64,000 bases of DNA from Monocercomonoides exilis PA203 (GCA_001643675.2 LSRY02000002.1:868001-932000), one strand, 5' to 3'. Positions 15,101-47,679 are shown, numbered from the stretch's first letter. Numbers and translations: made by a program. Notes: a model not told the origin generated them from the sequence alone.

Positions 15101-17045
15101 TTCTCCACTGGAGAAGTAACGGCTTCACGTGATTTCGCACACATCCTGACCACGCGCAGGTTCGTCTTCGCGATCTTCTCAGTCAGCTGGTCCACAGCTA
15201 CATTGGACGGCGCACACACAAGCACCTGCCCTTGCTTCATCGCCACAAAGTTGTACACAATCGTCGCAGATGTGACTGTCTTCCCTGTTCCTGGAGGACC
15301 CTGGATTAGCGTCAGCGGCCGTGTCAGCACCTGCTTCACAGCAGCCACTTGGGAGTGGTTGAGGTCAGGCAGGTTCGGCGCAGAAAAGCGCTCGGGAAGT
15401 GAAGGGAATGGGAAACCAGTTGCTTCTGTGTATGCTGCTTTGGCTGACTCGATGTGCTGCGCGATCATCTGAGGCGTGGCGGTGGCTTCGGTTGGAGGCG
15501 TGGAGAAGATCTGGGACGAGGTGAGGGCAAGCTGCCTGTCGCCGAGGATGAGAGCGCGCAGATAAGGAGAGATGCATGTTGGGTGGTCAGTGAATGTGCG
15601 CAGGGCAGCTGTCATCCGATCGAATGAGGTGGACTTCCACATAAAATGGACAGCGTAGTCAGTCGTGATGGACGGGTTCACGCCGGCATTGCTTCGCAGC
15701 TCCAGGCAGACTTCTTCGTCTGAGTGTCAACAAATGTGCAAGTTTAAGTTAGTTAAGATGGGAAATGTTGTTTATAATTTTAAGAATGTTAAAAAGATGT
15801 TTTAAAAAAACATTCAAATACTGAAAAATCTCTTTTTTAATTAAAAAGTCCAAACTTGCTGTCATTCTAACAACATGGCCAACACAGCTGAATTCTTGGT
15901 TCTTTCCTTCAGCCTGATGGTACAGACTGAGCTCATCTCCAGGCATCAACCGAAATTCGGATTCTTCCTTTGGAAACAGAAAGAATGCTAATCTTTTCCC
16001 ATTCAATCCCATATCCCACCGCACATTTACTCCAGACTTTGATTGGGATTCCTTCATTTTCCGATCATAATCTCCTTCCATCGTGATAAGAGGTGCAAAG
16101 ACAGTGAAATATCGCTCTGGCTCTTCGAATCTCAAAGGAACCGGAAGTAAATCAGGCTCTCTATCATCCGAAATATCAATAACTGCAGGGCTCTGTTGCC
16201 TGCCTCCTCCAGACGACCCACTGTTGGACGAAGCTGCTGTTGCTGCCGCTGCAGCCTTTGCTGCTCTGCCCCATTGCTCTTCTAATCGTGCAATCTCACT
16301 TGCAGATACACGCCTGCACATCCTTTCTTCGGCATCTTTTGGCGCACCAACAAGCCAGTTTACGAAACTTCTTTCTTGAATCAATGGAGTCCATACTGAT
16401 GTATCCCAAGAAGGATCTTTTGCGGTAGATGCGCAAGGTTCACTTAATGTTTTACAGTTTTTTGAAATTATTCAACACTTTTTTTAAAAACATAAATTTA
16501 CAATATTATTCAAACCGACATAAAAGAACAACAGCTGACTCTTCTTTTGCTGAAATAAATCCAAGAACAAAGCAATTACAATTTCCACAGTTGTAGCATT
16601 CAAGTTTAGATTCTCCAAGAGGTCCAGCAGGATGCAAATTGATTTCTTTGTGCTTTGAGCGAACCATATGCATAACAATGTGAGAACCAGAGTTATTCCC
16701 TTTACCATTGCAAAACCATCTTTTGCATATGTTGCATTGGACGACACAAGTTGGAGAACGAACACCACAATAGCTTTAAATTGCAAAACAACGACATGGA
16801 GAATAATAAAGAAAGATACAACAACTTTAATGTTTTCAAAACCTGCATTCAAAAGTGTCTTCATCTTCGCTGAGTGCTTCAAGATCATCTAAATCATCAC
16901 CCCCGGGACTTAGGGCTCTTGACGGATATTTCTGTGGATAATATCCACAACGTATTTAACAAAATCATAAAAAGGCAGGACGAAAGTTAAAGATAAAAAA
17001 GAGTTATTCGCTTCAAAAATTTATGCACACAGAATGGCTTGACAT
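12133..17045 (-). CDS. UPF1: Regulator of nonsense transcripts 1 (SF1 RNA helicase), multi-exon
   Basis: Spliced CH domain [40 protein letters not shown]...LECYNCG. Helicase motifs [35 protein letters not shown] and LNVALTRAR. Proposed 15-nt first exon 17045-17031 (MSSHS), introns 17030-16932 and 16842-16774, plus two more near 16.5 and 15.8 kb. Confidence 0.97.
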
Positions 17046-19621: not shown

Positions 19622-21970
19622 CTACTTCTTCAAGTGTATTCCTTCAACTGTCACATCGTTCTCCATCGCCACCACAATGCCCTTTTGTGAAAGCGTGCGA
19701 GAAGTCGAAAAGTCGCCATCAACAACAATCTGTGGCATCCTCTTCATCTGATAGTCAGTCACTTTGCCTTGCTTCACACGACGCATGTTCCACGTGATGA
19801 TAAACGGACCCGAAGTCGTCACAATCGCACGCTCCTTCGGCATCGCCCGCCCTTCACCGCCCTCGTCATCAAAGCCAACCTCCATCGATCTCCGCTTCTT
19901 CTCTTCTTTTCCTTCCTCTTTCTTCGAGCTGTTGCTTCCTTCTCTGTCCTTCTGTGTCAGCATCATCGTGACCCATCCTTCATCATCGAACTTCGCTGGC
20001 GTAAAGCACACCCGCCCGCCCAAACGCATCACATCCCGATACGACAGCTCCAACCTGCGCACTTGCAGACGCGCCTTGTCTTCGCGCGGCATCGACTTCG
20101 TGAAGCAGCTGATAGGCGAGGCTTCGGTTGATGCTGACAGCAGCGTCGGCACCACCAGCAGGCACGTCTGTGTTGTTGCCACCACCCACTCTCCGTCTGC
20201 ACTCACGTCTATTCCAATGATGGCCTCAGGCCCAACGCTCATCATCGTCTTCGCGCGGTTCTTCAGCGACTCGTCGAAGAAGCGCAGGTCGCCCTTCGCC
20301 GAGCCAGACACGATGCACCCGTTCATCGTAGATGCCTCACAAAGGAGGTTTGCTCTCGTTGAAGGTGAATAAAAGAACGAATGCCCAGCATCGCTGCAAA
20401 GCCTACCGTGCAACCCATCTGACTCGCCACGAAGCGTCGAGATCGACGACGCTGTGGACGATGACGATGCCTGGGAAGCGATTCGCGGATCCATCAGGAA
20501 ATGTCCCTGCTTGTTGAAGGCGACAAACAGAGGGTTGTCTGAATGCGGAGACTCCTTCGTCGCTCCGATCAGCCCGTCGATCTTCGTGCCAACCTCGTTC
20601 GTGCCCCACTCCTCCACCACTTGTCCGCGCTCCAAGTCCAGCGCCATCACCCGGCTCATGTCCAGCGGATGCCGCACAAGCATCTGGTTGTCGCTTCGGT
20701 ACAGCATCGCCTGCGACGGGTGTGACCGCTCAGCAACAAGCTGGATCATGCCGTCGCTGCTTGCTCCCAGCGACGATGCAAGCCCTTTGACTGTTGAAAA
20801 TGTGTGGATTTTCTTCATCGGCCCGCTGTTTTGCCCGCGTCTGGATTTTTTCCCACGTGAATGTTTTCCTTCCTCTTCCTCTTCGTCCTCCTCCTCATCT
20901 TCGTCTTCGGGGTGCATTGGAAGTCCGTAGATATCAATTCCACCATTGGACGTGATCACAAATGAGCGAGGTACACTTCTTCCGACTAAAAGCAGCCTGT
21001 TGTCTTCATGTTTGCTAGAAGCAGTTGCCGAAGAACTTTTTTCTGCTTTTCGATCATGTTCTTCTTCTTCATCATCTTCTTCTTCTTCTTTTTCTTCTTC
21101 TTCTTCACTTTCAATCATCTCATCTCCGCGTGCTCTTAAGTTAAGCTCTCTTTTACGTGCCTCAATCAATTCAAGTTCTCTTTGCTGCATTTCTTTCTTT
21201 TCCAGCTCGTCGTCATATTCTTCAAAATCAAGTTCTGATTCGTCTTCATCCTTATCATCTTCTGTTATCGTTTTTCTTGATCCGTTCAAAAGTAATTCTT
21301 GGTCTTCACATTTTTCCCATGGAATTTGATTATTAACTTCAAAAAGTTTCTTTATGCACTCGGTCCGAAATTGTTCAAATTCATCTGAAGAAACAATACG
21401 AACAGTCAATGTAAGGACAGTTCTTTCTAGATGAGTAACAAATACAAATGATTGATGAGCATCTAAAAATGTTAAATTCAAATCGGGTGTCAGTCTATGT
21501 AGGATAAGTGGGGTTCCATCTTCTTTTGAGATATATAAATTGAAATCAAAAAACGGTTTTGTTTTTTTGCCTTTTTGCGGTTTGGCAGTAGAAGTATCAT
21601 TGGTTGTTGGATAAATGCTGACTGTGCATGATGGCTCGGCAAGTTCAAATTGTTGGGCTCTTCCATTGAAAATAAACAGAACTCCATGAACTTGAATTAG
21701 AGGTGCAGGCAATCCAAGCTCAGGAAGATCATCATCTGAATGTTTAGGAGGAAGTTCCGGATAATCTGGTAAATCTTTAAGAAGAGAATCTTGAGCATGT
21801 GGTACGCTTGATGAAGGAGCAGTCAAAGTTTTAATAAGTTGTTCATTATCTTTTCTTGGATTTGAGCGACTCATTCTTTGTTCGATAACTTTTTCTTCAT
21901 CCACATTATTATCTTTCTTCCATGACAATGGATTTAAATGTCCGACAGCTGATTTAACCCAGCCAAACAT
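19622..21970 (-). CDS. VID27: VID27/CYPRO4-family protein (PH-like plus beta-propeller)
   Basis: LDLERGQVVEEW, FLMDPR, GSAKGDLRFFD..RAKT, IIGIDVSADGEWVVATT, FTPAKF and IVTTSGPFIITW match the VID27 C-terminal domain. Intronless 782 aa. Confidence 0.88.
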   Translation of the reverse strand: MFGWVKSAVGHLNPLSWKKDNNVDEEKVIEQRMSRSNPRKDNEQLIKTLTAPSSSVPHAQDSLLKDLPDYPELPPKHSDDDLPELGLPAPLIQVHGVLFIFNGRAQQFELAEPSCTVSIYPTTNDTSTAKPQKGKKTKPFFDFNLYISKEDGTPLILHRLTPDLNLTFLDAHQSFVFVTHLERTVLTLTVRIVSSDEFEQFRTECIKKLFEVNNQIPWEKCEDQELLLNGSRKTITEDDKDEDESELDFEEYDDELEKKEMQQRELELIEARKRELNLRARGDEMIESEEEEEKEEEEDDEEEEHDRKAEKSSSATASSKHEDNRLLLVGRSVPRSFVITSNGGIDIYGLPMHPEDEDEEEDEEEEEGKHSRGKKSRRGQNSGPMKKIHTFSTVKGLASSLGASSDGMIQLVAERSHPSQAMLYRSDNQMLVRHPLDMSRVMALDLERGQVVEEWGTNEVGTKIDGLIGATKESPHSDNPLFVAFNKQGHFLMDPRIASQASSSSTASSISTLRGESDGLHGRLCSDAGHSFFYSPSTRANLLCEASTMNGCIVSGSAKGDLRFFDESLKNRAKTMMSVGPEAIIGIDVSADGEWVVATTQTCLLVVPTLLSASTEASPISCFTKSMPREDKARLQVRRLELSYRDVMRLGGRVCFTPAKFDDEGWVTMMLTQKDREGSNSSKKEEGKEEKKRRSMEVGFDDEGGEGRAMPKERAIVTTSGPFIITWNMRRVKQGKVTDYQMKRMPQIVVDGDFSTSRTLSQKGIVVAMENDVTVEGIHLKK

Positions 21971-28072: not shown

Positions 28073-29645
28073 ATGACCGAAGCAGAGGAGAAGGAAGCAC
28101 AAATTCAAAAAGTGCTTCAGGCAAAGAAAGAGTATGAGATGGAGCAGATGCTAAAAGACCAATATGTCGGGGAAAGAGTTTGAATAATTAAAAATTATCA
28201 ATATTTGATTATATTTGATTCTTATTAATATTAGGAAAGAATATCAACATTTCTAACTTTTAAAAAGCAAGAAGTTAAAGCACTTCAATCGGAAATACGT
28301 AATCAAGAGAGACTTGCCGAAGAAAAACGCGAGAGTTATCGCATCATGAAAAAAGTTTTTTAATTATTTAGAATGATCCATTTTACAAGCAAATTTATCT
28401 AATATAGGAATATCTTCAAAAGCTAAACCATTTGCTTTATGAGTATCAAAATGAATTATCTCAAAAGAAAACTGAAGCCATCGTTCATGTTGCTCGAGAC
28501 CTTGATGAACTGAGAACTTCAGAGCGAGAAACAGAAATTGAAAGGCGAGACGCAAAGGAAAGATTTAAAAGAGTTGATTTGGATGAATCGGAATTGTTTT
28601 TTAGGGAAAAACTTGTTTGCATTTTCTTTGTCAAAGCTGTTCATATTTGATATAATGTTATTTAAGGCGCATGATCGAGAAATATCAGAAATCCGACAGC
28701 AACACGAAATGGAAGTGAGAGAAATGATTCATAAATATGATGAAATTATTCGGGATTTGCGAGATGAAATGGAAGCACAACGCAAAAAGGAGATAACAGC
28801 TCTCAATGATGCAAAACGTCAACAAATCACCAAACTGACTGAAAAGCATCTTGAAGTGTGATAATAATACTAAAAGAAATAGAATTAATCATTCAAATTC
28901 GTGTCAACATTTTGTTAAACATTTTTCTTCTAGGAATTCCATCGAATCAAAGCATATTACAATGAAACCACTCATCAAGAACACTTCACATTAATTGAAC
29001 AGCTGAAGGGGCAAGTCAGTGAGAAGAAAAAAATAGAGGCAGCGCAACGAAAGATGCTGAGTCAGACAGCTGCTGAAAGCAAAAAAGAAGAAGAGCCACT
29101 TCGGCAAGCAGTGGAAGAATCAGAGAGGCTCCGACAGAGGCTTAAAACTTGGGATGAGGTTAAATGATTCATTTTATTTATTTATTTATTTTTTTTGACA
29201 ATTTAATTTTCTCCCTTAACTTTTCCTCAACGAATGCTGTTCTGAATGATGCATGCTTTCACACATCATATACATATTGCATATATAAAAATTCTTTAAC
29301 AATCATTTAACCTCCTTTCCATCTTCAACTCAAAACATACATCACCCCAACTTCCCCCTCTTCCCTTTCCCCCTCTTCCCTACCCATCCATAGCAAAAAA
29401 TGCAACTCGACGAAGCGAAGTCGAAGGAGCTCACACTGAAAGCGCGTCTGGAGCAGCTGAGCTGGGAGCACGAGGTGCTGACACAGCGGTGTGCGCAGGA
29501 GGAGCGGGACAGAGACGAGCTGCAGGAGGCCTTTGAGAAAGAGGCCTACAGCATCCAGCAGTCGGCGCTGCTCCACGGAATGCTGATGGAGAAGAAGATG
29601 GCGAAGCTGAACGAAATGATGGAGAGAAGAGTGTGAATTAAATCT

Positions 29646-29676
<31 letters not shown>

Positions 29677-30781
29677 TTAACATTTGAAACCTCCACTTTA
29701 TTTTTCAATGACAATATGCTTAATAATTTATTCACTATATTTATAATAACTTCACACTTTCTTATTCTTCTATTTTATCTACCAACACTTCAATTTTCTG
29801 CTCTTCCTTCTCCTCTTTTTTTCTCTCTCTCTTTCTCTTTCCTTCTCTCTCTCTCTCTCTCTCTCTATTTCTCTTCCCTCCTCTCTTCCCTTCCCAATCA
29901 GGATGCCCAACTGTCCGAGCTGCTTCTTCTTGCCGATCCCGATGGTGATGGCATGATTGGCGGAGTTGACCAGAGAGAAGCACGCGACACTGCCGTGGAT
30001 GTGATCAAGCAGAAGAACCAGGAAATACACAGACTCGAAGACGACCTGGAGAAGCTGACGAAGGCGCACAGGGAGACCATTCGGTTCTATGAGGACATCC
30101 TCAAGCAGTACGAGATCCCGTTCGAGGTGTGGATTTGCAGGATGATTGATAGCATTTGTAGTTATTTCATTATTTATTTTGAATTTATTATTATTGCTAT
30201 TATTATTATTATTATTATTATATTTATTAATCTTTTTTCCCATTTGGAATAATTGCTCATTCCTTTCATATTCACCCTCACCCTCCACCCCTTTTCACAT
30301 ACATCAGGAACTTGGCTTCCTTCCTCTTGTTACATCACTGGAGGTTCCCCCGAGCCACGACGAAGAAGAGCTTGAAGAGATTGAGAACATCGACCAGTCA
30401 ATCATTCGGAACAAGCGCAGCGGGCGCACAGGGCGGATGGGGCAAGAAGAAGAAGTGCCGCCGTATTCAGCAACACATCCGATCAGCAAAACAGGCAATG
30501 AAGAAAGAAGACAGCAGATGGGCCAGCCTTCTAGTTCATCTGCTTCTTCTTCCTCTTCTTCTTCCACTATTCCTTCTTCTCCTTCATCACCATCTTCTTC
30601 TTCCTCTTCTACCTCTTCCTCTTTGTCTTCAGCAAGAAAACCTTCTTCGCCTGCTTCAACCACTCCCAGAAGAATCGCCTCCACAAAAGTCACAGCCCGC
30701 TCGCCAATCGCCAAAACCACTGCGAAAAAGGCTGTCACCCCAAAAGCAGTAGCAAAACCCAAGTCAGCAACAACCAAATGA
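28073..30781 (+). CDS. GAS8: Dynein regulatory complex subunit 4 (GAS8/trypanin), about 8 exons
   Basis: Spliced coiled-coil protein with HLLYEYQNE, EFHRIKAYYNETT...LIEQLK, LSWEHEVLTQR..ERDRDEL and KAHRETIRFYEDILKQYEIPFE|ELGFLPL, matching GAS8 motifs in order. Confidence 0.85.
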
Positions 30782-31290: not shown

Positions 31291-34200
31291 TCATTTGTTC
31301 TTTCTCTTTCTCGTACGATGAGGAGAAGACGAAGAAGACGACATCGAAGAAGAAGAAGAAGAACTCCTTCCAGTCGAACTTCCATTTCCCTCATCCGATC
31401 CATTTCTCCACTCGCTATCACTGCTATACGAATCACTTTCATCATCATCATCCTCATCATCCTCTTCCTCTTCCTCTCTCCTCTGTGCATACGCTGTGAT
31501 CACCCTCCCAAGCTCCATGTCGCTCGTCACGATGTGCTGGATGAAGAACGACTGCACCACGTTCGACGTCACCAGCGACGTGTCGGGGCGGTGGATGAGC
31601 AGCCGCAGCAGATACGACGCCTCCTTCAGAAGAAACTTGTGTTCTCTTATGTGCTCAATGGCATCTCCTTCCTGATACGACTGCGGGCACAGCGTGATCA
31701 TCCACTGCGCTTCCCGGTCGAACTGGCTCTTCATCGTGCACAGCACATTCTCTGCCGCCTGCACAAGCATCGGGTCTGCAGCTATTGATAGACCAGAGTC
31801 AGAAGAAGAAGAAGAAGAAGATGAGGAAGAAGAAGATGAGCCAGACGAAGACGAACCAGCAGCTGTGGGGAGCAACACAGACGCGCCTGCCCCTGAACTC
31901 GACTGCTCATTTACTTCGCTCTTCTCCTCTGCGATTTCAACTACCGATGCGAGCAACGTGAGCAGGCGCTTGTTGGCGAAGTTGAGCGGCGGGTGAGCTG
32001 TGGCGTATTCGTCCTTCCACTGCAGGTCTTCTCTTTCAATCGACGGGATCAGGTCGCGCAGCAGCTTCGTTTGGTTCATTAGGTCAGTGAAGAACGAGCG
32101 CAAGGGGAGCATCACAAACAGCACCACAAACAGAAATATCACCAGGTTGATGATCGCCATCGTCCGGTTCATCTTCTCCGCATCGCCGATTTCGACCTCT
32201 GTCTGCGCGCGAATCAGCTGCGTGTGGATCTCCGAGCCTTCGGTGAGGTCGTTACTGGCGATGCTGAACAGTCGGAGGAATTGTGCATTGCTCGAATTGA
32301 CATCGGCCAGGCTGATGTGTGAGAGATACAGGCAGTCCCGGAGAAACACATGGATCAGCCCATCAAGGCCAGCAAACCGCTGCGTCATCAGCACATTTCT
32401 GTCTGGCTTCTCTTCACATTTCGTGCGGTTCTTCAGCAAGCAAGACGTGCGCTGCACCATCAGCACATCCACCGATGGAAGTGAACCTTCCAGCACAGTT
32501 GTCTTCAGCCCTGCAATTGTGGCATCCTGTGCAATCTCCTCCACCACCACCCCCTTTTCGGCCTCTTCGCTTCGGACTTTGCTGCGGATGTAGTCAGAGC
32601 CGTATCTGAGGTGGTCGTCGGTGTTGCGGTAGTCCATCACTGCCCTCGCCAGCAGCTTCTGCAGCTCTGCTTTGCTGTTCATCAGGTGGCACAGGTCTCT
32701 GCTGACTGGAGATGTTCCCTTGGAGTCAACAACATTTGTGATTGGTGCGGGGTTGTTGGGAAAGACAAGCTGCATTGCGTAGTAATTGAGCTGCATGATC
32801 TGCACATGGCGGATCGACGACAAAATGAGCTGGTTGCCCAGCGCTTCCACTTTCGTGAAGGAAGTAAAGCCGACGATGATTGTCGCGACTAACAGGCCCA
32901 ACACACACACAATCGCGACTGTCAGCTGCAGCACGGCGCGGACGCTGATGAACGAGGGAAACTTTCTCGCCTTCGTCTGCAGCTCTGCCACAGCGTGCTT
33001 CATGTTCGACCGCCACTCGTTCCACTCCCTCTCTGTGCGCACATGCACATTCAGCTCTGCCACATCCACATGCGCTGCACCAGCGACTGAGGGCGAAGGA
33101 GGCGTCGGCGGAACATCCAGAGCTAAGGCACGGGCTGTCTGGTGGCTGTCTACATTTGCTTCGCCTTCGGCTTTGTCTGACTGATACAACCGATCATCGC
33201 CTCCTCCTCCTCCTCCTCGCGCTCTGTGGTAGCGATCTCTCAGACGCTTGTGAAGGGAGCTGATCGAATTCCGTTTTTCTCTTTTCCCCTTCTTTTCTCT
33301 GTCTCCTTCTCCCCTTTCGTTTTCCTTGTAGCGCTCTTTCGACCCTTCTTCTTCTTCTTCTGATTCATCCATCCCTTTTACTTCGCCATATCTCACTTTC
33401 ACTTTGTACCCCTGCTGTCCCTTTCTCCCTCTTCTCTGCCTTCCTTCCTCACTCCCGTCACCTCCTTGTATTATCTCCAGATCAAGCGACGGCGGCCGTT
33501 TCGAATGCTTTCTTTTCCGCTCGTCGTTCCTTCCCCTCTTCTTCCTGCTCCCTTTTCTTCCTCTTTCGCCATGTCTGCCACCAGACGAGGAAGAATCCGA
33601 CCCTTCTTCTTCTTCTTCTTCCTCCTCTCTGCTTTCACTCACACGATGTCTATGTTTGTGCTTGCGTTTACTTCTGCTCTTGCTCTTGCTTCTGTGCTTC
33701 TCCTTCCTCCTGTTTGCTCCATATGATTTCATGCTCACATGAGAGATTGAGCCGTCGTGGCTGACCAGTGACACAAGATCACCCGAGCCCTTCACCCCCG
33801 ACTGCGCAATCACTCCATTGCTCTGATCTGCCGGCAAAAGCGCATTCAGCGCGCTCACATTCGCTACCAACTGCTGCTGAATCTGCTGGTGCTGTGCACT
33901 CATCTGACTCAGCGCCACCTGGCCCTGCTGGAACTGCTGGTCAAGCAAGTACTGCTGCTGCTGGAGTTGCTGCTGCATCTGCTGCTGGAGCTGGATGTCT
34001 TCCCCCGGTGCGTGTGTATTCATCTGCTGGGCGATTGTCATCGCCTGGAACGCAATCGCATTTTGCTGCTGTTCTGTCTGTTGGATCGCAGACTCAACTT
34101 GCATAAGCATCATCTCCAGCTGCTGCATGTTGTATTGGAGAGACAGAATCTGCTGTTCTTTCTGTGCTTGCATCGCCTGCATCGCTTGGACTGTCTGCAT

Positions 34201-37200
34201 GTTCTGCGCGGATGGGCTGAGGGAGTGCTGGAAAGAAGAAGAGGATGAAGAAAAAGAAGATGGCACATTCCCAAGCTGCATTGGAGGAAGTAAAGAGAAC
34301 TGTGAGGGAGAGCGGAAGTTCTGTAAAATAAACTGTTGTTGCTGTTGCTGCTGCTCATTCATCAGCATCTGCTCCTGCGACGCAGTCAGCATCGCTTCTT
34401 GCTTCAGTTTCTCTGCTGCTTCCGCCTCCGCCTCTGCTTCTGCCTCTTCCTGTCTCATCCTCTCCTCTTCCTCTGCTTTCAGCCTAGCTTCTTCGATTCT
34501 CCTCCTCTCCTCGTTCTCCTTCGCCACCAGCTCCTCATACCCCAGCTCTGTCCTCTCGTCTGCCTTCTGCCACTCCAACTCGCTCTCTATCGCTGTCACA
34601 TCCTGCAGCCGCGCCAGCAGCCCTCCGATGGTTGAACGTGGCACCATCGACAGCACCAGCAGCGACTGCTTCCCTTTCTCCGACGCCTTCCGCATCGTCA
34701 CCACGACAAACACACTCAGCAGCACCATCGCTGCAACCACACACACACACAGGGCAGCTGTGATGATGGCTGACATCTTCGTGATGTTCTTCTCCATGTT
34801 CGCACTGTCTGTCGCCAGAATCGCCTTGATGCGTTCAGTCAGCAAGCCAGGCACTGTCGCCAGGGAAACAAGCATCTGCGTCGCGAAGGAGTTGCTCAGA
34901 GAAGCAGAACCACCTCCCCCTGCTTCTATCGCCGCAACCAAGTTCTTCGCCTCGCTCATCACGTTCTGTGAGACCGACCGCAGGATGCCAATGACTGAGT
35001 CTGCCCGTGTGTTCTGCCGAGTCGCCAGCCCGTTCTCTACTGTGATGTGTGTGTATTCTTCCCTCTTCTCCCAGAGTGCATAGACATGGTTGTCGTTCGC
35101 TGATGTCCGCACGAGTTCAGACAGGTCGGTCGTGACAGCCACCAGCTGCGCTGCGAGCTCGGCCAGCGGAGGCAGCACGTGCTGTGCATCGAGTGTGAGG
35201 CAGCTGTCTGGATCTCCGGGAGAGCCCGTGGCGTTCATGTAGAAGACAAGCCCAATCTTCGTCAGCACCGCCATCCTCGACGCATTCGCCATGATCGACC
35301 CGACTTCTGCCAGCGTCGCCACGTGGCTTTCTGTCGCCTTCCGGATCGAGTTGAAGACGAGGAAGTTCGCAAGAAAACCTCCACCAACCAGCAGAAACAC
35401 AACAAGCAGCACAACCAAGTAGATATCCACTGATGATGCCATTTTCTCTTGCCCTGTCAGCTCAATGCCGATCAGCGCTGCCATCTGCCGCTTCTTCCGC
35501 AGCGCATTCTGCTTGTCGCTGCTCGCCCCTCCGCTGCCGCCCCGCTTCTTCAGCCGGTTCCGCCGCAGCGTCGCCTTCAGCTCCGCTTTCTCTCTCCGCT
35601 CGCGCTCTCTTTCATCTTCCTTCTCGTTCCTCTCTTTCTCCACCACTATCACTTGCTCTGATGAGCCATCACTGCCATCTGCTTTGCCAGCGTTCTTGGC
35701 ACTTTCGGAATTCGCATCTGCTCTCAACAGCTCCACTCCTTCTGTCTGCTTTGCTTCTGGCAACACTGTGGCTGGTCCTGAACTTGTTTGAGCTTTTTCT
35801 TTCTCCCTCCGCTTCCTCTCTCTGTCTTCCTCTTTCTTCCTCTCCTCTTCCAGCTCCTCTGCGCGGTAGTACATCTGCTCCGCCGCGTCGTCGTCCTTCA
35901 TCACTTCATACAAGAAGTCTCCATACGACGACACAACATCTGCTGAGTTCGGATATTCTGACATGAGTTTCTCGTATCTCCTCTGCGCTTCTGCCGAGTG
36001 GTCGTGTATTCTCCTCAAAAGCGACGGCAGCCCTGCAAAGTCCGGCTGCGGGCGCTGGAGGTTCTCCCAGAACTCCCTCAGCGCCTGTTTCGCCTGCTTG
36101 TGGGACTCAACTGCGAGGGGCAGGTTTTCTGTGAGCTGCTGCTGCGACACAGCAGCCACGAAGATATCGTCAGCAGAGCGCGAGTCGGCAGTCCAGCTGC
36201 GGAGGGCGACGAAGATGCAGAAGCGGTGCAGGCGCTCTGGGTGGTGCTGGCGGGCAGTGGTCATCAGGGCGTGGGCTTTGGCGCTGTCCTTCGTGTAGAA
36301 GTGGAGAAACGTGGCGTAGCGGATGTAGGAGAGGGGCATTTCCTTGAAGCGCTCGAGGGAGACGCGGTAGATGGCTTCCGCGTAGTGCAGATGGCGTTTT
36401 GTGCGGAAGGGCTTGAGGGTGACGAAGCGAGTAGCTCCAACCACTTCGTCGGGCGCGCGCAGCTTTGGAATGTGAGGGTATTTGTACTGGCTGTGGGGTG
36501 GTGCTACGACATCAACTGGAGAAGAGAAGAGAAGAGAAGAGAAAAAGGAAGAAGAAAAAAGTTATTGAAGAAAAAACAAAGAAAATCGAATTGTAAATCA
36601 AAGAATATTCACAAAATAATAATCCAACAATTAATTTCAAAAAAAAAAAAAATATGTATATGCGCAAACTGTCATCATAGTTCAGCTCCTCCATCTCGTG
36701 TGGTGTCTCAGACGGGAGCTGCACCATTTCCAGCATCATCTTCTCTTCCTCGCTCTTGTTCCTCTTCAGCCGGTCCCTCACCGCCTTCTTCCTCGCCCGC
36801 TCGTCTGCCACATCAGCGTCTTCTCTTTCCTGCTCTGATTCGTCCTCTTTCTTCAGCACTTTGTCTCTTTCGACTTCGATCCTGCCCAGCAACGTCGGGC
36901 GCGCGGCTGGCTCACACAAAACCGCCTCAGCTGGCTCTGAAGGAACACGCACCTGCTGCGGATCAGCCGGGTCGGCATACATTTCGCCGTCGCTCCAGAC
37001 AAACCACTTGCCACGGAAGGAATGCTTGAAGAGGAATGAGAGGAGGAGGGGGAGGCCGATGACCCCGGCGAAGAGGAGGAGGAAAGTGATGACGTTCATT
37101 GCGGTGGTCCGGGGGAGATACAGTGCTAATGGAAAAGTGGATGAGTTTTTTTTATAAAATATTATTATTTATTGTTTAAATAAATAAATAAATAAATAAA

Positions 37201-38850
37201 AAAGGAAATTAAATTATGAAAAATTTCAACAGCTGATAAAATTCTATTGCAAACATATGAAGCTGATGAGCAGAATCCAACATTGGACAATTGTGTTCGT
37301 CATAAACAAGATGTTCCCTGTTTCTTGATGATACGGCTGTGCAGCAAGAGTAAATCAATCAATCAATCGTTCAGTCAGATCGAAAGATGCCATCCAAGTC
37401 ATCAAATAAATAAACAATATAATTTTTATAGAAAGTGAAAGAAAAAGGAGAAGGAAGAAACAAATGTTTTGATACCAATAATCACAATAATTATTAAATA
37501 AATGTTTTTTTCATTGAACTTCCGTTGTCAAACAGACAAAAAGCATCAAACCTGCTCGTCAAAACAGAAATATGTGAGCACCAGAAAAAACAGTGACACG
37601 AGGGCGAATCTCCACCAGCCGTAGTAAGTGACGATGTATCCAACAACCACATGACTGATTTCAATGCTTGACTATTTCAATCAAAGAAAGTGTATTTATT
37701 TATTTATTTATTTTTAGAAAATAAAATAAGTTATAATTTATATAAGTAAATGCATATGACATTACCTCCCAAAATGCCCAATTTCCGTTTTCACGTGCAA
37801 ATATTCCTCCATGTTTCGTGTTTGTTGGGTTGCAATAGTAGCGAACGAAATATATAACAAACCATATGAGAACAATAATAACGCACGAAATAATAAATAG
37901 AGAAAGATGTGTCGCAGAACTGTGGAAGAAGCAAGAAAAATGTTTTTGAAATATTCATAAATTTTCATGACGAAATTTCAATGTTTAACAAAAGAAAATT
38001 AAATGTAGTTATATTAACAAATGATCAAATATAAAATAAACAAACAATGCAGTCATCCAAGGAAGAAGATCAAGATAAATTACATCTTCAGGCGAGTCGT
38101 AGTCAAAAACAAATATGACAGATAGCCAACACATGGATGGAATAACTCTTTAATAACAATAGAAAAAAAGATGAAGTTCAAAGAATAAAATTTCAATTAA
38201 ATTTATCAATAATAATGTAATATAAAAAGTACTAACAAATGATGCATACAAAACATATTGATAGAACTTCACCCACATTCGATAATAATCAAGAAGCCAT
38301 TTCATTGATTTTTGTAATTTCTGAATTCAAACAATCGATATATATACATAATTTTGAAAGAATGAATTAATCGACACACCTTAAAAAATTTCGCAGCAAG
38401 AATCATTGATAACAACAAATTAAAAAGAAAAAATATGGCCAATCCAAAACAAATAAAATATGACGTTTGAGACAAAGTTGCAAGAGGAGCAAGAGTAATC
38501 CAATTTATGATAGTATAAAACATGTCCGGAAATGGCAAAGGTGAGAATAACAATGAAATGGAAGTGCATTGAAGAAAAAACACAATCCAAAGAAAAAGAT
38601 CGAATGACGGTGTTCCATGTTTATTCTAAATTATTAATGCAGAAAATAATAACATTATTTGTGAAAAAATAATTAGAAAAAAATCAATGTTGGAAAAATT
38701 GTATTTCAGATGAATAATATATAATATAAAAAAATAAACCTGTACGGCAAGAGGATAACATAAATTAAAAATAATTTCGTCAGTGGTAGAACTTTTTTCT
38801 AATGAATCACTTTGTGAAGATTTTTGTCGATCATCTGCACCACCTTTCAT
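31291..38850 (-). CDS. TmcB/TmcC-family multi-pass membrane protein with TPR segment and C-terminal hemerythrin-like domain
   Basis: Small hydrophobic 5' exons from ATG 38850 (first intron 38739-38626). TPR-like block ALREFWENL...YPNSADVVSSYGDFLYEVMKD, two TM-ectodomain-TM modules, then WKDEY...QFDREAQWM...HIREH...HIVTSD. Internal exon boundaries at 37.1-38.4 kb are not fully resolved. Confidence 0.75.
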
Positions 38851-39510: not shown

Positions 39511-42500
39511 ATGTCATCGCCTCAATTTGCTTTGTCATCAAAAGAACAGTTAATTATTCAAACTTTATCAAATCCTCAAATTTCAGCGTTTACATTTCAT
39601 TCTGATTTTCTGGACATACTTTTTGGATTCACTGTTCTGGCTGAAAATGATGAATCTTTTCTTCCTCTATTTTGTGAAATGATTCAACGATATGATTGGA
39701 CACTTAGAAATGAAAAAGTCGATCAAAGATGCGAATATAACTTCTTTCAAATCAAACAATTTATTTTGCAAACAGTTGCTCAAAAGCTATCAATACTTGA
39801 TCGATTAACAGTCAAACCTAAAAATCCTTTGATGGCGAGCGTTCAAAATCCATATCTTGTATTCTTTTCATTCATTGTTCCAGAATTAGGACAGATTTTC
39901 TTCCGAGAAGAGCAAGCAAAATTTGGTACAAACCTTTCTTCTCCAATTTTCGTGGAACAAATAGCAAATGCACTAAATCAACACAGTCAAGCAAGAATTG
40001 ACTTATCTTATCTTCTTTCTCTTTCATCTTTGGAATCGCTTCAAGTTGCTAGCGATCAATTTGTTGAAATGGAGAATTCACGAAGTTTGCTTTTTATCAT
40101 TTCTCAAATTTCAAATTTTTTTAATCATTTTTTTTTTTCAGCGCAAGAACAGATCAACCAGGTTGATTGCAACAGGGAAATTTCGCAGCAAGTGATGGCC
40201 ATTTCACCAGAGTTGGATCCATCTTCTCTGGCAACATATCAGCAATCGCGTGGGCTTGTTGGCGGAGCGATGGATGCAGTGAGCTACCAGAACATGATGG
40301 TGCAGTCTTATGAAGGAGAACTTAAAATGGACAATGAAATGGACAAGTGGGAAATGGACAAAAAGAAAGCGATGATGCTGGGCGTGGAGTCTGCTGCGTC
40401 GGCACAAGCACTCACAAGCAGTGAAGCAGGCAACGAAATGATGGACATCGATGAAGTAATAAATGATAATGCCAGCATTTCAGGCAGTGCTGGTGGTTAT
40501 GATACTCTGAAATCAACGCCTCGAATAAGAGGCGACTCGGGGATGTTTTCTTTGAAGAGCTCGTTACTCACGCTGTCGCCGTCGGTGATGCTGCACGAGA
40601 TGCAGAAAGAGCGAAGAGAGAAAATTAGAGATGAAGAAAGTCAGAGAGAGAAGATGAATGAAAATGCAATGGATTTGACACCACGCATTTCATCGTATTC
40701 GTCTGCTGCAGACTCAGCTGCATTGCAAACATCGCTTTCTTTGCCTTCTTCTTCGTCTTCGTCTTCGTCTTCAATCTTGTCAACTCCTCCTATTTCTGAC
40801 TCTTCTTCTTCCTCTTCTTCCTCTGCGTTTTCACTTGGATTTCATTCAACACTGTCACCAAACCAATTCCATCATTTTTCTTTCTCTCCCACCTCTTCCT
40901 CCTCCTCCTCTTCGTCTTCCTCTGCCCCCTCTTCTTCTTTATCTCCATCATCTTCTTCTTCCTCTTCCTCTAACATCATCTACCCTTCTGATTCTTCACT
41001 CGAACAATCATCATCATCATCATCATTATCTTCTTCTTCATCTTCTTCTTCTTGTGAATCAATTCCATCTTCATTGAGCTCTTCCTTCTACACACACACT
41101 CTTTCAATGCTCGACCAAAACAGCTCAATCACATCCACCCCACCTCCTTCTGCTTTGTCTCTTTCATCAAACGGATCATCTTCAGCATCAATGTCTGCTT
41201 CTTCTTCTTCTCCCTCTTCTTCCTCTTCTTCTTCTATTTCTTCTTCTTCATCTTCCTCCACTTCTTCACCAACGCCTTACACTTTTCCTTCATTTGGTTT
41301 CTCTCCCTTTGTATCTTCTTCTTTCTCTCCTTCTTCTTCTTTCGCATCGTCCTTGTCTTTCACACCTTCTTCTTTCTCTTCTTCGTCCTCCTCCTCCTTT
41401 TTCTCTTCGTCGCCTTCTTCTTTCCTGTCTTCTGACAGACACAACTCGATTACTGAGCTTTCGTTGACACAACCTCAGAACATACTCGATAACACAACAA
41501 CAACAACAGCAGCAGAAGCAGAAGCAGAAGATGAAGATCCAGCTGCAGCCATCGCAAATAGAAGCAGAAGAAACAGAGAAGCAGAAGAAGAATCTGAAGC
41601 AAAAACAATGGAAGAACAAGAACAAGAACAAGAACACGAAGGAGAGGAAGAGAAAATTGAAAATTTGTCATTTGCCCCTTTGTCACTGGCAGACAACAGA
41701 AGCACAGCAAAAGAATCGACTTTGTTTTCTGGAAGGGATTTCAAACAAATTTCTGAAGAGACACAAGGAAAGATGTTTCAGCCACAAAATGCAGAAGGCG
41801 CAGGGCTGATTGGCAAAGAGGGCTTTTTTGAGAGAAATGCGAATGGAAACATGCCAAATGGATTGTCCCAGCAATTCAAAGAAGAGATTTCAAACTGCTC
41901 GCATTTCGCATTCAACGCAAACAAAGAAGGAATTGAAAGTTTTGAAGAGAAAAACAGAATGAAAAGCGAAAATGTGCTGGAACAAAATGCAAGTGAAGAT
42001 GACAACGACGACGCGTTTTTGGCTGGCTCAGCTTCAGCAGGCGCTGCAAACATGCCGGAAAAGATGTTTCGGATGATGCAGAAGACGAAGAAGACGCTTG
42101 AAGATTTGGATAAAAAAATGACTGGAAGTTTTGAAAAGGAAGGCGAAATGCAGGAAATGGAAGGCGATGAAGAGAAAGAGAATCTGCCACACGATGCAAG
42201 TTCTTCGTTGTTTCTGAAAGTGGAAAAGAAAACTTCATCATCATCATCATCATCATCATCTTCTTCTTCTTCAAACCCAAACACCAAAAATAATTCATCT
42301 TCTTCCACAATTTCTGAATTTGACAGCACAACATTAACATACCCTCCACATAATGCTGACTCCCCCACCTCTTTTTCTCCGCTTCTTCCATCTGACCAGC
42401 CAACCAATGTAACCACTACAACTTCTGCAACCACTGGAATCACTGCAACTTCTGCAGCTACTGGCTTTTCTTCCTTTTCTGATGAGGAAGACGAGCAAGA

Positions 42501-42682
42501 ACAGCCAAAAAGAAGAAGCGGGCGGTGCGGGCTGAAGAGAAGAATAACACCAAGAAACCAGAGTCCAAAGGAAGGAAGCTACTGTAACATCAGAAGTGGG
42601 AAAATGGATGAAGGAAGCTTGGGGGATGGGAGTGAGGAGAAGAAAGAAGAAGATGCAAGGAATGATGATGGAGAAAGAAAAG

Positions 42683-42714
<32 letters not shown>

Positions 42715-45700
42715 TATGATGATGATGATGATGATGATGGAGTGGATGCTCAGCAAATTTCTGGCTTTTTGGATCCGCTTGCTCCTCCGCTGCAGACAAT
42801 GACAAGAAAGATGGAAAGGCAGGAAATAAGAGAACAGAACAAACAAAACATGAGAAACGAGAAAGAAAGTGAAGAAAATTTTGATGAAGGTAGAATCAAT
42901 GAAGGAGGAAGAAGCGAAGCTGCTGGCATTTCCAATGATAACTCGATGATAACAGGCGAAACTGAGCTTGGCAAGAAAGACGATTTCATTGATGAGGAGT
43001 ACGGGATGAAGCTTGACACAGAAAAATCAATATCATCAATGACTTCAACATTATCTTTGCCTTCCTCCTCGTCTTCTTCTTTCCTTTCGCTTTCTCTTTC
43101 GCTTTCGCCTTCTTCTTCGTTTTCTGAGTCGCCATCAGCTGTTTCTGCCTCAGCAGTCCATCCGTTTCTGACATCTGCCTTCAACATTCATCAGATGCAT
43201 CAACCTCAGAACGAACTTAACGACGCAATGCAATCAATCTCTTCTTCTTCCTCTTCCTCTTCCTCTTCCTCTTCATCATCATCTCCATCTTCTTCTTCCT
43301 CTTCTTCGCTTCTTGCTTCATCAAACATTCCACCTTTGTCTTCACTTCCACTCTCTCCAACAAATCCTGATTTTTCCTCCACAAACATTCATCCGTATTT
43401 CTCTTCCTCTTTTTTCGGCTCATTATCATCATCATCGTCTTCTTCTTCTTCATCTTTATCATCTTTGTCATCATCATCATCATCTTCTTCTCTTGCTTCA
43501 AACGGATTGCCTGTAACAACCTATCAAACCTCCTCCTCCTCCTCCTCCTCTTCCTCTTCCTGGATCCCTTCCCCTTTCCTCTCCTCTCCTTCCTCTCCAT
43601 TCAACACAGAATTCACTTCTCCTTCTCTTTCTGAAGCGTCACTTTATCCATCAGCTTATTCCCAGCTGCCTTCAATGATGTCTTCTTCTTCTTCTTCTTC
43701 TTCCTCCTCTTCCTCTTCTTCCTCTTCTTTTGGCTCATATGCACCACACAGCTTCTGTTCTGCTCGCAGTTGTGGTAGAAGCAGAGGAACGATGATGCCA
43801 TTGCAATCATCATCAATGCAATCATCGTCACCATCTTCTTCTTCCTCTCCTTCCTCTTCTTCTCCCACAACTTCTGATTATACATCTCCATTGCTTTCTT
43901 CTTCTTCTTCTTCTTCTTCCTCAAATTTTGTTCCATCATCTTATCATTTGCGTAATCCTCACCCACTTTCCTACTCAACATCACTTTCTTCTTCTTCTTC
44001 TTCTTCCTCCTCCTCTCCTTCTTCTTCTTCTGCTTGCAATTTTTCAATGACACATTCCGCCCCTTCTTCCTCTTCTCTGATGGGCTCTGCTTCTTCCTCT
44101 CTCCAATCCCCCTTTTTCACTGCCCACTCTCAGCCGCCTCATCCGCTTTCCTCCATTTTTGCTTCCTCGTCGCTTGCCTCTCCTTCTTTCCTGCCAACCA
44201 CTTACTCTTCTGGAATGAATGCCATGCACCTTTCCTCTTCCTTTTCCTCCTCCTCCTCTTCTTCCTCCTCTTCTTGCTCCTCCTGCTCCTCCTCTTCCTC
44301 CTCTTCTTCTGCTTCTTCCTTCGGCTTTGGAGAGGCACACGAAGCGCCAACTTTATCGTTTCCTTTCCTTTCGACCGTATTTGGCCCCCGCTTAGCGCAG
44401 GCGATGTGCGCATTCCTGGCAGAAACAGCTGAGCCAGTGATCCAATCAACCCCAGCCCTTTCTCTGCAAATGATCTCTGCCTCTTCTTCTTCCTCATCAT
44501 CTTCCTCCTCCTCCTCCTCTTCTTCCTCCCCAGCTCGCTCTTCTTCTGACTTATCACCCATCTCCTCTCTGCTATCTTCCTCTCTCTCATCCGCTTCCCC
44601 TTCTTCCTCTGCACTCTTGTCCGGAATGACACCTTCAGTGATTCCTCTCTCTTTGCCCCCGCCGCAGAAGGAGAACGGGAGGTTCACGCCTTCAGTGCTG
44701 CGCCTGCTGAAGATGTGGTACGACGACAAAAAACGGAGAATTAGAGAAGAGGCAATTCTCCGGGCATATCCGGGACAGATGAGCCAACAACAACAACAGC
44801 AGCAGCAACAACAGCAGATGATGATGAAGCAACACAATCAGAAGCAGCTATATGGACAGTCACCGTATTATCAGAGAATAAACCAGCAATCATCGACTTC
44901 ATCATCATCATCCTCTTCTTTTTCTGGTTCTTATCAATTTGCAGACTCGCAAATGGAGGACAGTTCGATGAGCATGGCTGGAGGAGAAGATGAGCAGATG
45001 CAGATGAATGAGGAAGGAAGATACAACACAAGAATGAGGGAGGACCGAGAAAGGGAATTTTTGCACTCGAGAAGAGGAATTAAGAATGGGAAAGGGAGAA
45101 AACGGTACAGAACGTCGTTTGGCGGAGAATTCGAGAGATTTTACGATGATGAGGAAGAAGAAGAAGATGACGATGATGAAGAAAATGATAACGATGAAGA
45201 AGATGAAGATGAAGAAAACAAAATGAATGAAGCTAATGGAATGGATATGCTCCAAGGCGGATGCAGCAGCCAGATGTCTGCTGATCTCCAAGGCCAACAA
45301 AGCTATCAGTCTCAATTCGACCAGCAAAGCCAGTCGATGCAGTATTCAGCAGGAAACAGCTCTTCTCCATACAATTTTGGTGCCACGTACTATTCATCAG
45401 CTGGTTCAGTAGCTGGCTCAGTGGCTGTATCAACTGCATCAGCTGCTTCCCCATCGTATGGAAGGATGCCGTATCGTGGGGTGTATGCTACGAAGGAAGA
45501 GAAACGCATTCTGTGTGCGTTGACGAGGCTGTCGATGACACAGATGACGAACTGGATATCCAACATGCGCAATAGAGATCCAGATAAGAAGAGAGACAAG
45601 AAGGAGAGAGAAAGAGAAAGAGAAAGAGAAAGAGAGAGGGAGAGGGAAAGAGAGAGAGAAAGAGAAAAGGAAAGAGGAAAGTATTCAGAGAAGGACAATG

Positions 45701-47679
45701 CAAGACTGAACCACAACTCGCGCAATTCAAAGACGTATTCAGCTTCTTCTTCTTCTTCTTCTTCAAATTCTCCTCTTTATTCATCTTCTTTACACAGCAC
45801 ACACAATTCAATGTATACCACAGTTGGTCTTCCGTCTGCTTCTTCTTCTGAGCTTTCTCCTTCACATTCGCCGCGCCATCGCCAGAGGCAGCTGTCTGGA
45901 TCTTCTTCTCCTTCTTCTCTCGGCAGTTCGTTCTCTTTGGGCGACGATTCTTCTTCTCCTTCTCTTTCCTCTCCTCTTTCTCCTTCAAATTCTCTTTCTC
46001 TTTCTCCTTCTTCTTCTTCACCTCGATCACTCCAGTGTGATTCTCAACTTTTCGCCTCTGCTGCTCCTTCTGAGATGGACAAAGATTTTTATGGAATGAA
46101 CTCCTCAGAGCTGATTCAAGGCTCCTCTGCTTCATCATCTTCATCAGCTTCATATTCTATGTCTTCCAGTTCATCAAGCTTACTTTCTTCGACCGGCTCT
46201 TCTTTCTCTTCTCTTTCGTCTTTTCAGCCATCATCATCATTATCTTCTTCCTCTTCTTCATCTTCAAACGCACCCGCAACGTTGATAGCAGCTGTTTCTT
46301 TGAACAATTCACTGAAATCTGACCACTATGCCTTTGGAAATGCGAATCGTAGTCAGAATTCATTCACTTTCGAGTCACAATCAGCCAGCGATAAAGACAT
46401 TGATGAAGATTTGAGCTGGATCGATGGAGAAGACGAGAGCGGGGCGGAGAACACGAAGAAAGAGCAAACAGTTCAACAAGAACAGACAAATCAAACATCA
46501 TCAGCTTCATCGGCTTCATCATCTTCTTCTTCCTCTTCCTCTTCTTCAATGCAGTTTCCTTCATCAACAGGAGAATCGTCTTTATCTGATCAATCACGGA
46601 TGTCTTCAACAATACACACACCGCAAAATGGCCCAACACCATCAACATCGCCTTTTAATTCATCTTCTCCTCATATGCCACTTGTTTCTGCTTCAAACTC
46701 TTCCTCTTCGTTGGATGGCTCTTCAGCTCTTTCAAAGGAAGCAACAGAACTTTCTTCAGAACATTCACAGGGCATTCAAAATGAAACGCTCGATTTTGAT
46801 TTTTCAAGTGAAATGCCACAAGACAAAGCTATTTCTGATGAAAAGAACAGAAGCAGAGGAAGAGGCAGAACACGCGGAAGAGGACGAGGAAGAGGCAGAG
46901 GGCGCGGAAGGGTCGAAAGCAAAAAACGCATTCGGCTATCAGATTTGAAGAGCTTTGATTATGATGAAGAAGAGCATTCAACTGATTCACATGCAAAAAC
47001 GGAGAATTATCCAGTGTTCGGAGGCAGCAGCCATCCGATGATGAACAGCTTCTACTGCCCAACACAGCCAGCTTCTTTGGCTTCGCAAATTCCTTCGGTC
47101 ACACAGAACCAAACTGTCGTTGGAGCAGAAGGCTCAAATTCAGCAGGGCAAACATCAGAATCAACAACAGCAGAAAACGGCGAAGCAAAGAAAAATGACA
47201 CAAAAACTTCTCCGCTCGAAACTTCGAATATTAAAGTGGCTTCGACTTCTCCTATTTCTTCTCTTCTTGCATCCTCCTCTTCATCATCATTGATTCCCCC
47301 AGTTATTCTACCATCTTCCCTTCCTTCTCTTTCCCCAAAATATTCATTCCCCTCTCATAAACTTGGGCAGCCGCTGCCAAGAGCATCTTTGGCCATGCCG
47401 CCATCATTCAACCCGAATCACCTTCCTTCATACTCAACCACTTCAAAAGGCTTATCTACATTTCCTGTTACATTTCCTACTTTTAATGTTTCCAATCTAT
47501 CACCTTCTCCATATACCACGTCTTCTTCAGCTGCAAACATTCAGAAAAATATTCTGCCAAAATCAACTCTAATTCCATCTTCAGTTAACACTGTAACTCC
47601 TAGCATTACTTCAACTATTCCTTCAACTTATAATTTGCAGAAGAATGCAAATAACTCTTCAAAAAATATCCCTGCATAA
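39511..47679 (+). CDS. Giant Ser-rich protein with an interrupted TALE-class homeodomain
   Basis: Single 2722-aa ORF. Helix 1 RFTPSVLRLLKMWYDD (~44680-44727) and helices 2-3 YATKEEKRILCALTRLSMTQMTNWISNMRNR (~45484-45576). Also an (ER)n tract and an (RG)n tract. Confidence 0.7.

Follow-up and report, generated by a model that had tools for sequence, protein, structure and literature searches.

The window, a 64,000-nucleotide stretch of the Monocercomonoides exilis PA203 genome (GCA_001643675.2, LSRY02000002.1:868001-932000), carries on its minus strand a gene for a predicted multipass membrane protein with a hemerythrin-fold domain at its C-terminal end, referred to below as the receptor. Upstream of a 1717-codon open frame on the minus strand (36444-31291), tblastn with two paralogs identified eight more exons and placed the start ATG at 38850. 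All eight introns have GT-AG ends, their phases are consistent, and the joined frame has no internal stops. The gene model is as follows.

38850-31291, minus strand: receptor gene, nine exons, CDS of 6567 nt, 2188 aa
38850-38740, 38625-38380 and 38320-38250, minus strand: exons 1-3 (tblastn with paralogs)
38147-38046, 37919-37766 and 37671-37552, minus strand: exons 4-6 (tblastn with paralogs)
37336-37255, 37125-36670 and 36515-31291, minus strand: exons 7-9 (tblastn with paralogs)
36516-36669, minus strand: intron 8, 154 nt, GT...AG ends, spliced in RNA
31291-31482, minus strand: acidic, Ser-rich tail and TGA stop; tail unconserved in paralogs

Other genes were seen in the same window. On the plus strand, a spliced coiled-coil gene (28074-30781) converges on the receptor gene and ends 510 bases from its stop; we take its product to resemble a dynein regulatory complex (GAS8/DRC4-like) protein. 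A 2722-aa ORF with a partial Homeobox_KN match (39511-47679; E 2e-4) lies divergently, 660 bases upstream of the receptor gene. Farther away are a KTI12/PSTK-like kinase fused to a PRK/uridine-kinase-like domain (2133-4673) and two ordinary genes, one for an Upf1-like superfamily 1 helicase (AAA_11/AAA_12; 12133-15681) and one for a VID27 protein (19622-21970).

Transcription was followed in four RNA runs from one 2024 synthetic-community study. One contig per run precisely skips intron 8 (4/4 runs), and none of the listed RNA contigs falls within that intron, so the receptor RNA is spliced; the RNA test of splicing applies to intron 8, and the other seven introns rest on tblastn, GT-AG ends and phase. 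The four runs contain 99% of the sampled words, and the receptor gene is expressed. RNA contigs span both halves of the hemerythrin domain, run through the start of an insertion located between them, and break at a masked repeat (31791-31841). At 33026-33187 a second contig of 162 nt was present in 3/4 runs. It differs from the receptor gene at seven positions, six of them synonymous and one changing E to V within a conserved AELN motif. MONOS_13504, at 75% identity, is not its source; the contig suggests a near-identical expressed second copy, an allele or a culture variant.

Database searches were run with single-exon pieces of the receptor, and the closest protein was M. exilis MONOS_13504. 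Word-based protein searches matched members of the close subfamily only, the receptor's own protein being absent and no TMAC (transmembrane adenylyl cyclase) among the matches, and metagenome scans for receptor relatives found none. The subfamily compared throughout has seven members: the receptor gene, MONOS_13504, Blattamonas BLNAU_817/1833/6303, Streblomastix EZS28_008753 and a protein from a JGI metagenome contig (P0003).

The preliminary description had called the protein a TmcB-type membrane protein, and this identification is upheld by hydrophobic helices together with a TPR_TmcB domain (PF25474) that scores well above its cut-off (84.3 bits versus 27) and is the sole Pfam match in the receptor. 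The same domain was found in P0001, P0005 and P0085. Hydropathy predicts about 11-12 membrane helices. The N-terminal helix block is homologous to the hydrophobic N-termini of P0001 and P0002, and four predicted helices follow the TPRs in the receptor and in every full-length relative. The parts of the protein are listed from the N-terminus.

37050-38625 (limits approximate), minus strand: N-terminal block in exons 2-8, putatively 7-8 membrane helices
35833-36153, minus strand: TPR_TmcB (PF25474), predicted cytosolic (Pfam, E 8.5e-24)
34681-35448, minus strand: membrane helix, loop A (about 185 aa, predicted outside), membrane helix (hydropathy; sidedness putative)
32962-34680, minus strand: long low-complexity Q/E/K/R/S-rich loop, predicted cytosolic
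32077-32961, minus strand: membrane helix, loop B (224 aa, predicted outside), last membrane helix (hydropathy)
32026-32073, minus strand: juxtamembrane linker with LLxxLIP, motif kept 7/7
31483-32025, minus strand: hemerythrin-fold domain, four helices (profile and structural model)
31780-31914, minus strand: Ser-rich insertion of 45 aa between helices A and B, present in the receptor copy only and disordered in the model

Because four helices separate the TPRs from the hemerythrin domain, the two are expected on the same side of the membrane. N-glycosylation sequons occur at 0.7 per 100 aa in loop A and 1.1 in loop B, versus 0.4-0.5, and this excess, together with a Cys pair in loop B, lends weak support to a topology in which both loops face outside and the tail is cytosolic. 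The Q/E/K/R/S-rich loop terminates in a conserved LDVPPTPPSPS..AGAAH motif. Motifs of loop B include the Cys pair, which is invariant, HLRYG and GLD, and a P-box-like Arg follows the first helix of the loop in 5/6 relatives. Profile searches of Pfam and the PDB with loop B gave no match. In a model with a pLDDT of 52, its nearest named family in the Atlas was PilJ (0.89), and its similarity to NarQ was at noise level (Z 8.1). Loop B may bind a ligand outside the cell, the weak likeness of the model to NarX/PilJ four-helix sensors serving as a lead only. Unnamed clusters from ciliates and chytrids also resemble the segment at 32176-32847 (feature score 0.95).

The LLxxLIP linker presumably resembles the transducer element found ahead of class III cyclase domains. 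P0088, a TmcB protein without a hemerythrin domain, has a like motif (LIAMIP) and ends directly after it. The cyclase transducer element has been described (PMC5995499), and Trichomonas TMACs begin with 6-8 helices, continue with a conserved domain in the cytosol and then 4-6 helices that include two outside loops, and end in a C-terminal cyclase (PMC2914791). Pfam detected no chemoreceptor (MCPsignal, HAMP), kinase, cyclase or PAS domain in the receptor; since it has no catalytic output, any signal must go through protein contact, either by the TPRs or by a distal patch on the hemerythrin domain.

The final hydrophobic helix stops near 32077, and sixteen residues on, the domain begins with LQWKDEY (32025-32005). 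The four peptides on which the preliminary description was built, among them SQFDREAQWM (31728-31699), EHIREHKF (31656-31633) and FFIQHIVTSDMEL (31548-31510), all lie in a single open minus-strand frame within exon 9. Pfam, including PF01814, returned no hemerythrin match for the receptor domain or its relatives, and a single-sequence PDB search with the domain gave noise only. NCBIfam model TIGR02481 matched the receptor domain with an E-value of 1.6e-5 (25 bits, below the cut-off of 51.75) and two relatives over nearly their full length with 34.4 and 43.2 bits, also below the cut-off (E 1.9e-8 and 3.5e-11). When a four-sequence profile was run against 1.84 billion proteins, four close proteins came first and about 60 hemerythrins followed; the best PDB sequence match was the L114F form of Methylococcus hemerythrin (4xpw; profile E 0.0026). 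AlphaFold2 was given six oxymonad-type sequences only, with no known hemerythrin in the alignment, and produced four helices at a mean pLDDT of 75.7 with the insertion disordered. Among 48,161 chains the best structural match to this model was DcrH-Hr (Z 16.3, rmsd 2.2, 131 residues), followed by Methylococcus Hr (Z 14.9) and Themiste Hr (Z 13.3), the first unrelated bundle scoring 12.0. Hemerythrins also took ranks 1-5 in Foldseek, with weak E-values, and the top four places in the Atlas. The hemerythrin fold proposed earlier is recovered by two approaches, profile search and structure prediction, and by profile and modelled fold the C-terminal domain is a hemerythrin.

In addition to the Ser-rich insertion, the receptor domain has five extra residues in its B-C loop; the preliminary description mentions neither. 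The Ser-rich insertion is transcribed, as RNA contigs show; the masked repeat within it is unbridged, and continuity across it is likely. We considered that the insertion might be an unspliced intron and rejected this, as RNA contigs continue past a possible donor site near 31914 and none shows a splice junction.

Hemerythrins are defined by a diiron site, in which H73, H77 and H101 bind Fe1, H25 and H54 bind the O2-binding Fe2, and E58 and D106 bridge the two metals. Ligand columns were mapped without gaps by a profile of 40 short bacterial-type hemerythrins. This mapping agrees with the alignment by eye that first drew attention to the domain: E58, H73, H77, H101 and D106 are kept, H25 is replaced by N and H54 by Q. 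The positions concerned are given below, with counts over the seven subfamily members.

31972-31974, minus strand: Asn at the position of H25 (Fe2), N in 7/7
31723-31725, minus strand: Gln at the position of H54 (Fe2), Q in 6/7, H in the JGI protein
31711-31713, minus strand: Glu58, bridging carboxylate, kept 7/7
31639-31653, minus strand: His73 (31653) and His77 (31641), Fe1, kept 7/7
31519-31548, minus strand: F97, F98, His101 (31536, Fe1) and Asp106 (31521, bridging), 7/7
31585-31623, minus strand: motif E-A-x-Y-L-L-R-x-x-x-H-x-P in helix C and the C-D loop, candidate docking surface

In the alignment the receptor Q shares a column with His58 of Methylococcus hemerythrin, by our numbering the equivalent of H54. 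O2-pocket positions I28, F55, W97, L98 and I102 read L, F, F, F and I in the receptor, and the change of W97/L98 to FF is common to all seven subfamily members and absent from 74 other domains; the preliminary description does not mention it. The E-A-x-Y-L-L-R-x-x-x-H-x-P motif, together with an N and a Q in helix D, is invariant in 7/7 and variable in the same 74 domains; judged by the layout of the modelled bundle, this patch would lie far from the metal end.

Members of the subfamily are 40-59% identical and form a single clade (SH-aLRT 99) in a tree built by a quick method from 84 rows and 133 columns, a tree in which no bacterial donor of the oxymonad hemerythrin could be resolved among the sampled domains. 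The nearest relatives are oxymonad proteins, in line with the anaerobic protist host that had been guessed from the sequence. Six of the seven domains have the ligand pattern N-Q-E-H-H-H-D and the JGI protein has N-H-E-H-H-H-D; strict conservation consequently holds for N25 and the five kept ligands only. Invariant columns number 34 of 143, so that the chance of five given columns all being invariant is roughly 8e-4, a figure that ignores kinship and is a guide only. The preliminary description had set random ligand loss across relatives against its proposal, and no such loss was seen. On these alignments, the N25/Q54 pattern is a product of selection and not of decay.

Two members differ from the others in their gene models. 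Three annotated proteins of Streblomastix together make up the ortholog, a single gene when TAR is read as Gln; the exception is a TGA in frame within the TPRs (L008 3513-3515), where MONOS_13504 has Arg; the sequence is compatible with either a recent nonsense change or an assembly error. BLNAU_817 (3319 aa; L004 10001-22066) continues beyond the hemerythrin domain for about 1500 further residues, with numerous hydrophobic segments, and is probably a fused gene model.

Ligand loss is not peculiar to oxymonads. In 73 other domains H25 is lost nine times (six times to N), H54 four times and the other five ligands five times in all, so that 13/18 losses fall on H25 or H54, an excess inflated by recruitment of the bacterial set with an N/Q-biased profile. 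Replacements include N, R and C; double losses of the types N/R, S/R and N/C occur, some of them in tandem betaproteobacterial proteins that have close relatives with the corresponding domain intact, and four bacterial domains are N/H. The concentration of losses on these two positions indicates that Fe1-only domains recur in bacteria. Double-loss bacterial domains group apart from the oxymonad clade in the tree, and a published survey lists 106 bacterial ligand variants and leaves their function open (PMC4919030). As the sequences stand, ligand loss itself does not set the oxymonad subfamily apart; its amides are fixed in several genera, and its hemerythrin is fused to a receptor, and these two features do. 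Tandem two-domain bacterial hemerythrins with relatives in Betaproteobacteria/Rhodocyclaceae were observed at L005 2988-3881, L007 6001-7215, L009 656-1537 and L010 4001-4855, with Fe2 pairs H/H, N/H, N/R, S/R, L/H and H/D and with the Fe1 triad mostly retained; their housekeeping neighbours are uninformative. In the proteins at L009 and L010 the first domain is intact.

The explanation that we place first, and hold tentatively, is that the protein is a TmcB/TMAC-type multipass receptor in which a one-metal hemerythrin would act as a cytosolic switch or docking module at the end of the chain. The domain probably holds one metal and has a job unlike that of any studied hemerythrin. One divalent metal, most likely Fe2+, would occupy the old Fe1 site, bound by H73, H77, H101, E58, D106 and probably a water, and the amides of N25 and Q54 would stand in for the second iron by hydrogen bonding to those oxygens of E58 and D106 that are left free. 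Such a domain could not form the two-iron hydroperoxide seen in O2-binding hemerythrins. Single-metal occupancy, the redox state of the metal, or NO at the water position could instead alter the packing of the bundle, which would be coupled to the last membrane helix through the short transducer-like linker and would present the conserved distal surface to a partner. The analysis establishes the fold, the ligand pattern, its conservation, the expression and the architecture; from these we infer the identity of the metal, the role of the amides, the topology, and any signalling and its direction.

Retention of both bridging carboxylates beside fixed amides is most readily accounted for if the Fe1 site holds one metal and the NH2 groups of the amides cap the carboxylate oxygens thereby freed, and Arg54 in bacterial variants could provide the same capping by a salt bridge. 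This explanation draws on the fold, the five invariant ligands, the fixation of N and Q, the recurrence of Fe1-only domains, the TMAC-like layout, the second conserved patch away from the metal, and the spliced RNA. Against it stand the JGI member that keeps H54, the capacity of amide oxygens to bind metal, a model that carries no metal, the in-frame TGA of the Streblomastix copy, and the 45-aa insertion that the receptor copy tolerates at the same bundle end as the proposed docking patch. A bolder form, which is conceivable and which we regard as doubtful, would make these proteins a cyclase-free receptor class: oxymonads would have grafted a hemerythrin of bacterial type into the place that the cyclase takes in TmcB/TMAC receptors, where it became a mononuclear Fe2+/NO/redox switch with amides replacing the second iron. 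If true, the metal site of this grafted switch is one not yet described for the hemerythrin fold.

In a rather unlikely alternative the domain senses nothing: a purely structural metal staples the bundle, which is constitutively active as a module for docking, dimerisation or output, perhaps pairing with putative paralogs whose diiron site is intact, and it is the outside loops that give rise to any signal. The domain occupies the output slot of TMAC-like receptors, its strongest clade-specific conservation lies in the patch distant from the metal, and loop B is highly conserved with its weak NarX/PilJ likeness. F98 matches the Leu114Phe variant of Methylococcus hemerythrin, in which Leu114 is reportedly a regulator of a water tunnel; F98 is, however, present in 33% of other domains, most of them with intact sites, and a structural site has no obvious need for fixed amides at both positions.

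In a further alternative, unlikely in our estimate, the amide oxygens of N25 and Q54 join the bridging carboxylates in holding a labile Fe2+, Mn2+ or other hard cation, and filling of this weak second site is the sensing or catalytic event. Amide oxygens are weak metal donors. Both bridging carboxylates are present in 7/7, the replacements are fixed as amides and not as hydrophobic residues, and the N25/H54 pair of P0003, taken with the four bacterial N/H domains, suggests a graded series. This proposal is opposed by the Arg54 of bacterial variants, which cannot bind a cation, and by the lack of any known hemerythrin with such a site among those found.

A classical O2 sensor like DcrH-Hr, in which a retuned diiron site binds O2 and autoxidises, is scarcely credible. 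DcrH-Hr is the best fold match, pocket residues 28, 55 and 102 remain hydrophobic, and the anaerobic host has an enlarged oxygen-stress gene set (PMC6759080), but all seven members have lost W97, a chemoreceptor output domain is missing, and exogenous ligands bind Fe2, as in DcrH, where H118 is on Fe1 and azide on Fe2 (PMC3947700). With both Fe2 histidines gone, two-iron, two-electron O2 chemistry is unlikely, and O2 sensing by the hemerythrin mechanism, one of the functions first suggested for the domain, is unlikely with it. A decay scenario, in which a hemerythrin that was once intact degenerates neutrally as an unstable receptor family expands, is very improbable as well: 46% of TMAC family members are pseudogenes (PMC2914791), the receptor copy has private insertions and the Streblomastix copy a stop, yet the five ligands and N25 are invariant over three genera, the gene is open and spliced, and the hemerythrin domain is conserved to the same degree as the rest of the protein.

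A one-metal receptor domain would matter in several ways. The M. exilis genome paper treats hemerythrin as an oxygen-stress gene and mentions no receptor fusion, a paper on Preaxostyla leaves hemerythrin unmentioned, and a metamonad survey places tmcB-type systems in Carpediemonas only. Neither a TmcB-hemerythrin fusion nor a mononuclear hemerythrin appeared in a literature search that covered few subscription papers. The oxymonad domain offers a fixed, selected and expressed ligand variant, as against bacterial variants flagged as uncharacterised, and its size of about 150 residues makes a sharp prediction testable: one metal, no oxo-bridge bands, and restoration of a diiron site by N-to-H plus Q-to-H substitution. 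The receptor is a candidate for iron, O2 or NO sensing in an amitochondriate gut anaerobe.

The comparison with DcrH made in the preliminary description stands for the fold only. DcrH-Hr of Desulfovibrio vulgaris (PDB 2avk) shares with the receptor domain the four-helix fold and an N-terminal W..Y loop at 14% identity, and in both the hemerythrin is the C-terminal domain of a membrane protein, cytosolic in DcrH and predicted to be so in the receptor, with Fe1 and bridging ligands present. The intact diiron site and the chemoreceptor output do not carry over: DcrH is a methyl-accepting chemoreceptor with seven ligands and O2 or azide at Fe2, whereas the receptor has N/Q, F in place of W97, and no MCP. 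The bacteriohemerythrin of Methylococcus capsulatus (4xpw, L114F) shares F at the Leu114 position but is a soluble single-domain O2 carrier with its diiron site intact. Bacterial ligand-variant hemerythrins (PMC4919030; P0008, P0011, P0025) likewise keep the Fe1 triad and replace H25 and/or H54; in contrast to the oxymonad domains, they are soluble tandem proteins outside the oxymonad clade, their replacements vary among close relatives, and none has been characterised.

Among membrane proteins, the TMACs of Trichomonas vaginalis share the layout, as compared by description only, and an anaerobic metamonad host, but end in an active class III cyclase where the receptor has a hemerythrin and no cyclase match. 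The Dictyostelium TmcB/TmcC family (PF25474) shares TPR_TmcB in a multipass membrane protein, and a part for it in cAMP signalling and sexual development of Dictyostelium is cited in PMC12750705 and PMC8516963; no hemerythrin is reported for this family in the literature found. FBXL5 and plant HRZ/BRUTUS are functional analogs, eukaryotic regulators in which a hemerythrin-like bundle monitors iron status and does not carry O2. They differ in being ubiquitin ligases with diiron HHE-type domains, and FBXL5 has no significant similarity to O2-binding hemerythrins, whereas the receptor domain derives from the O2-binding type. The protein would work most like a TMAC-like receptor that bears a hemerythrin-type metal or redox switch, and it belongs neither to the O2-binding hemerythrins nor to the DcrH-type chemoreceptors.
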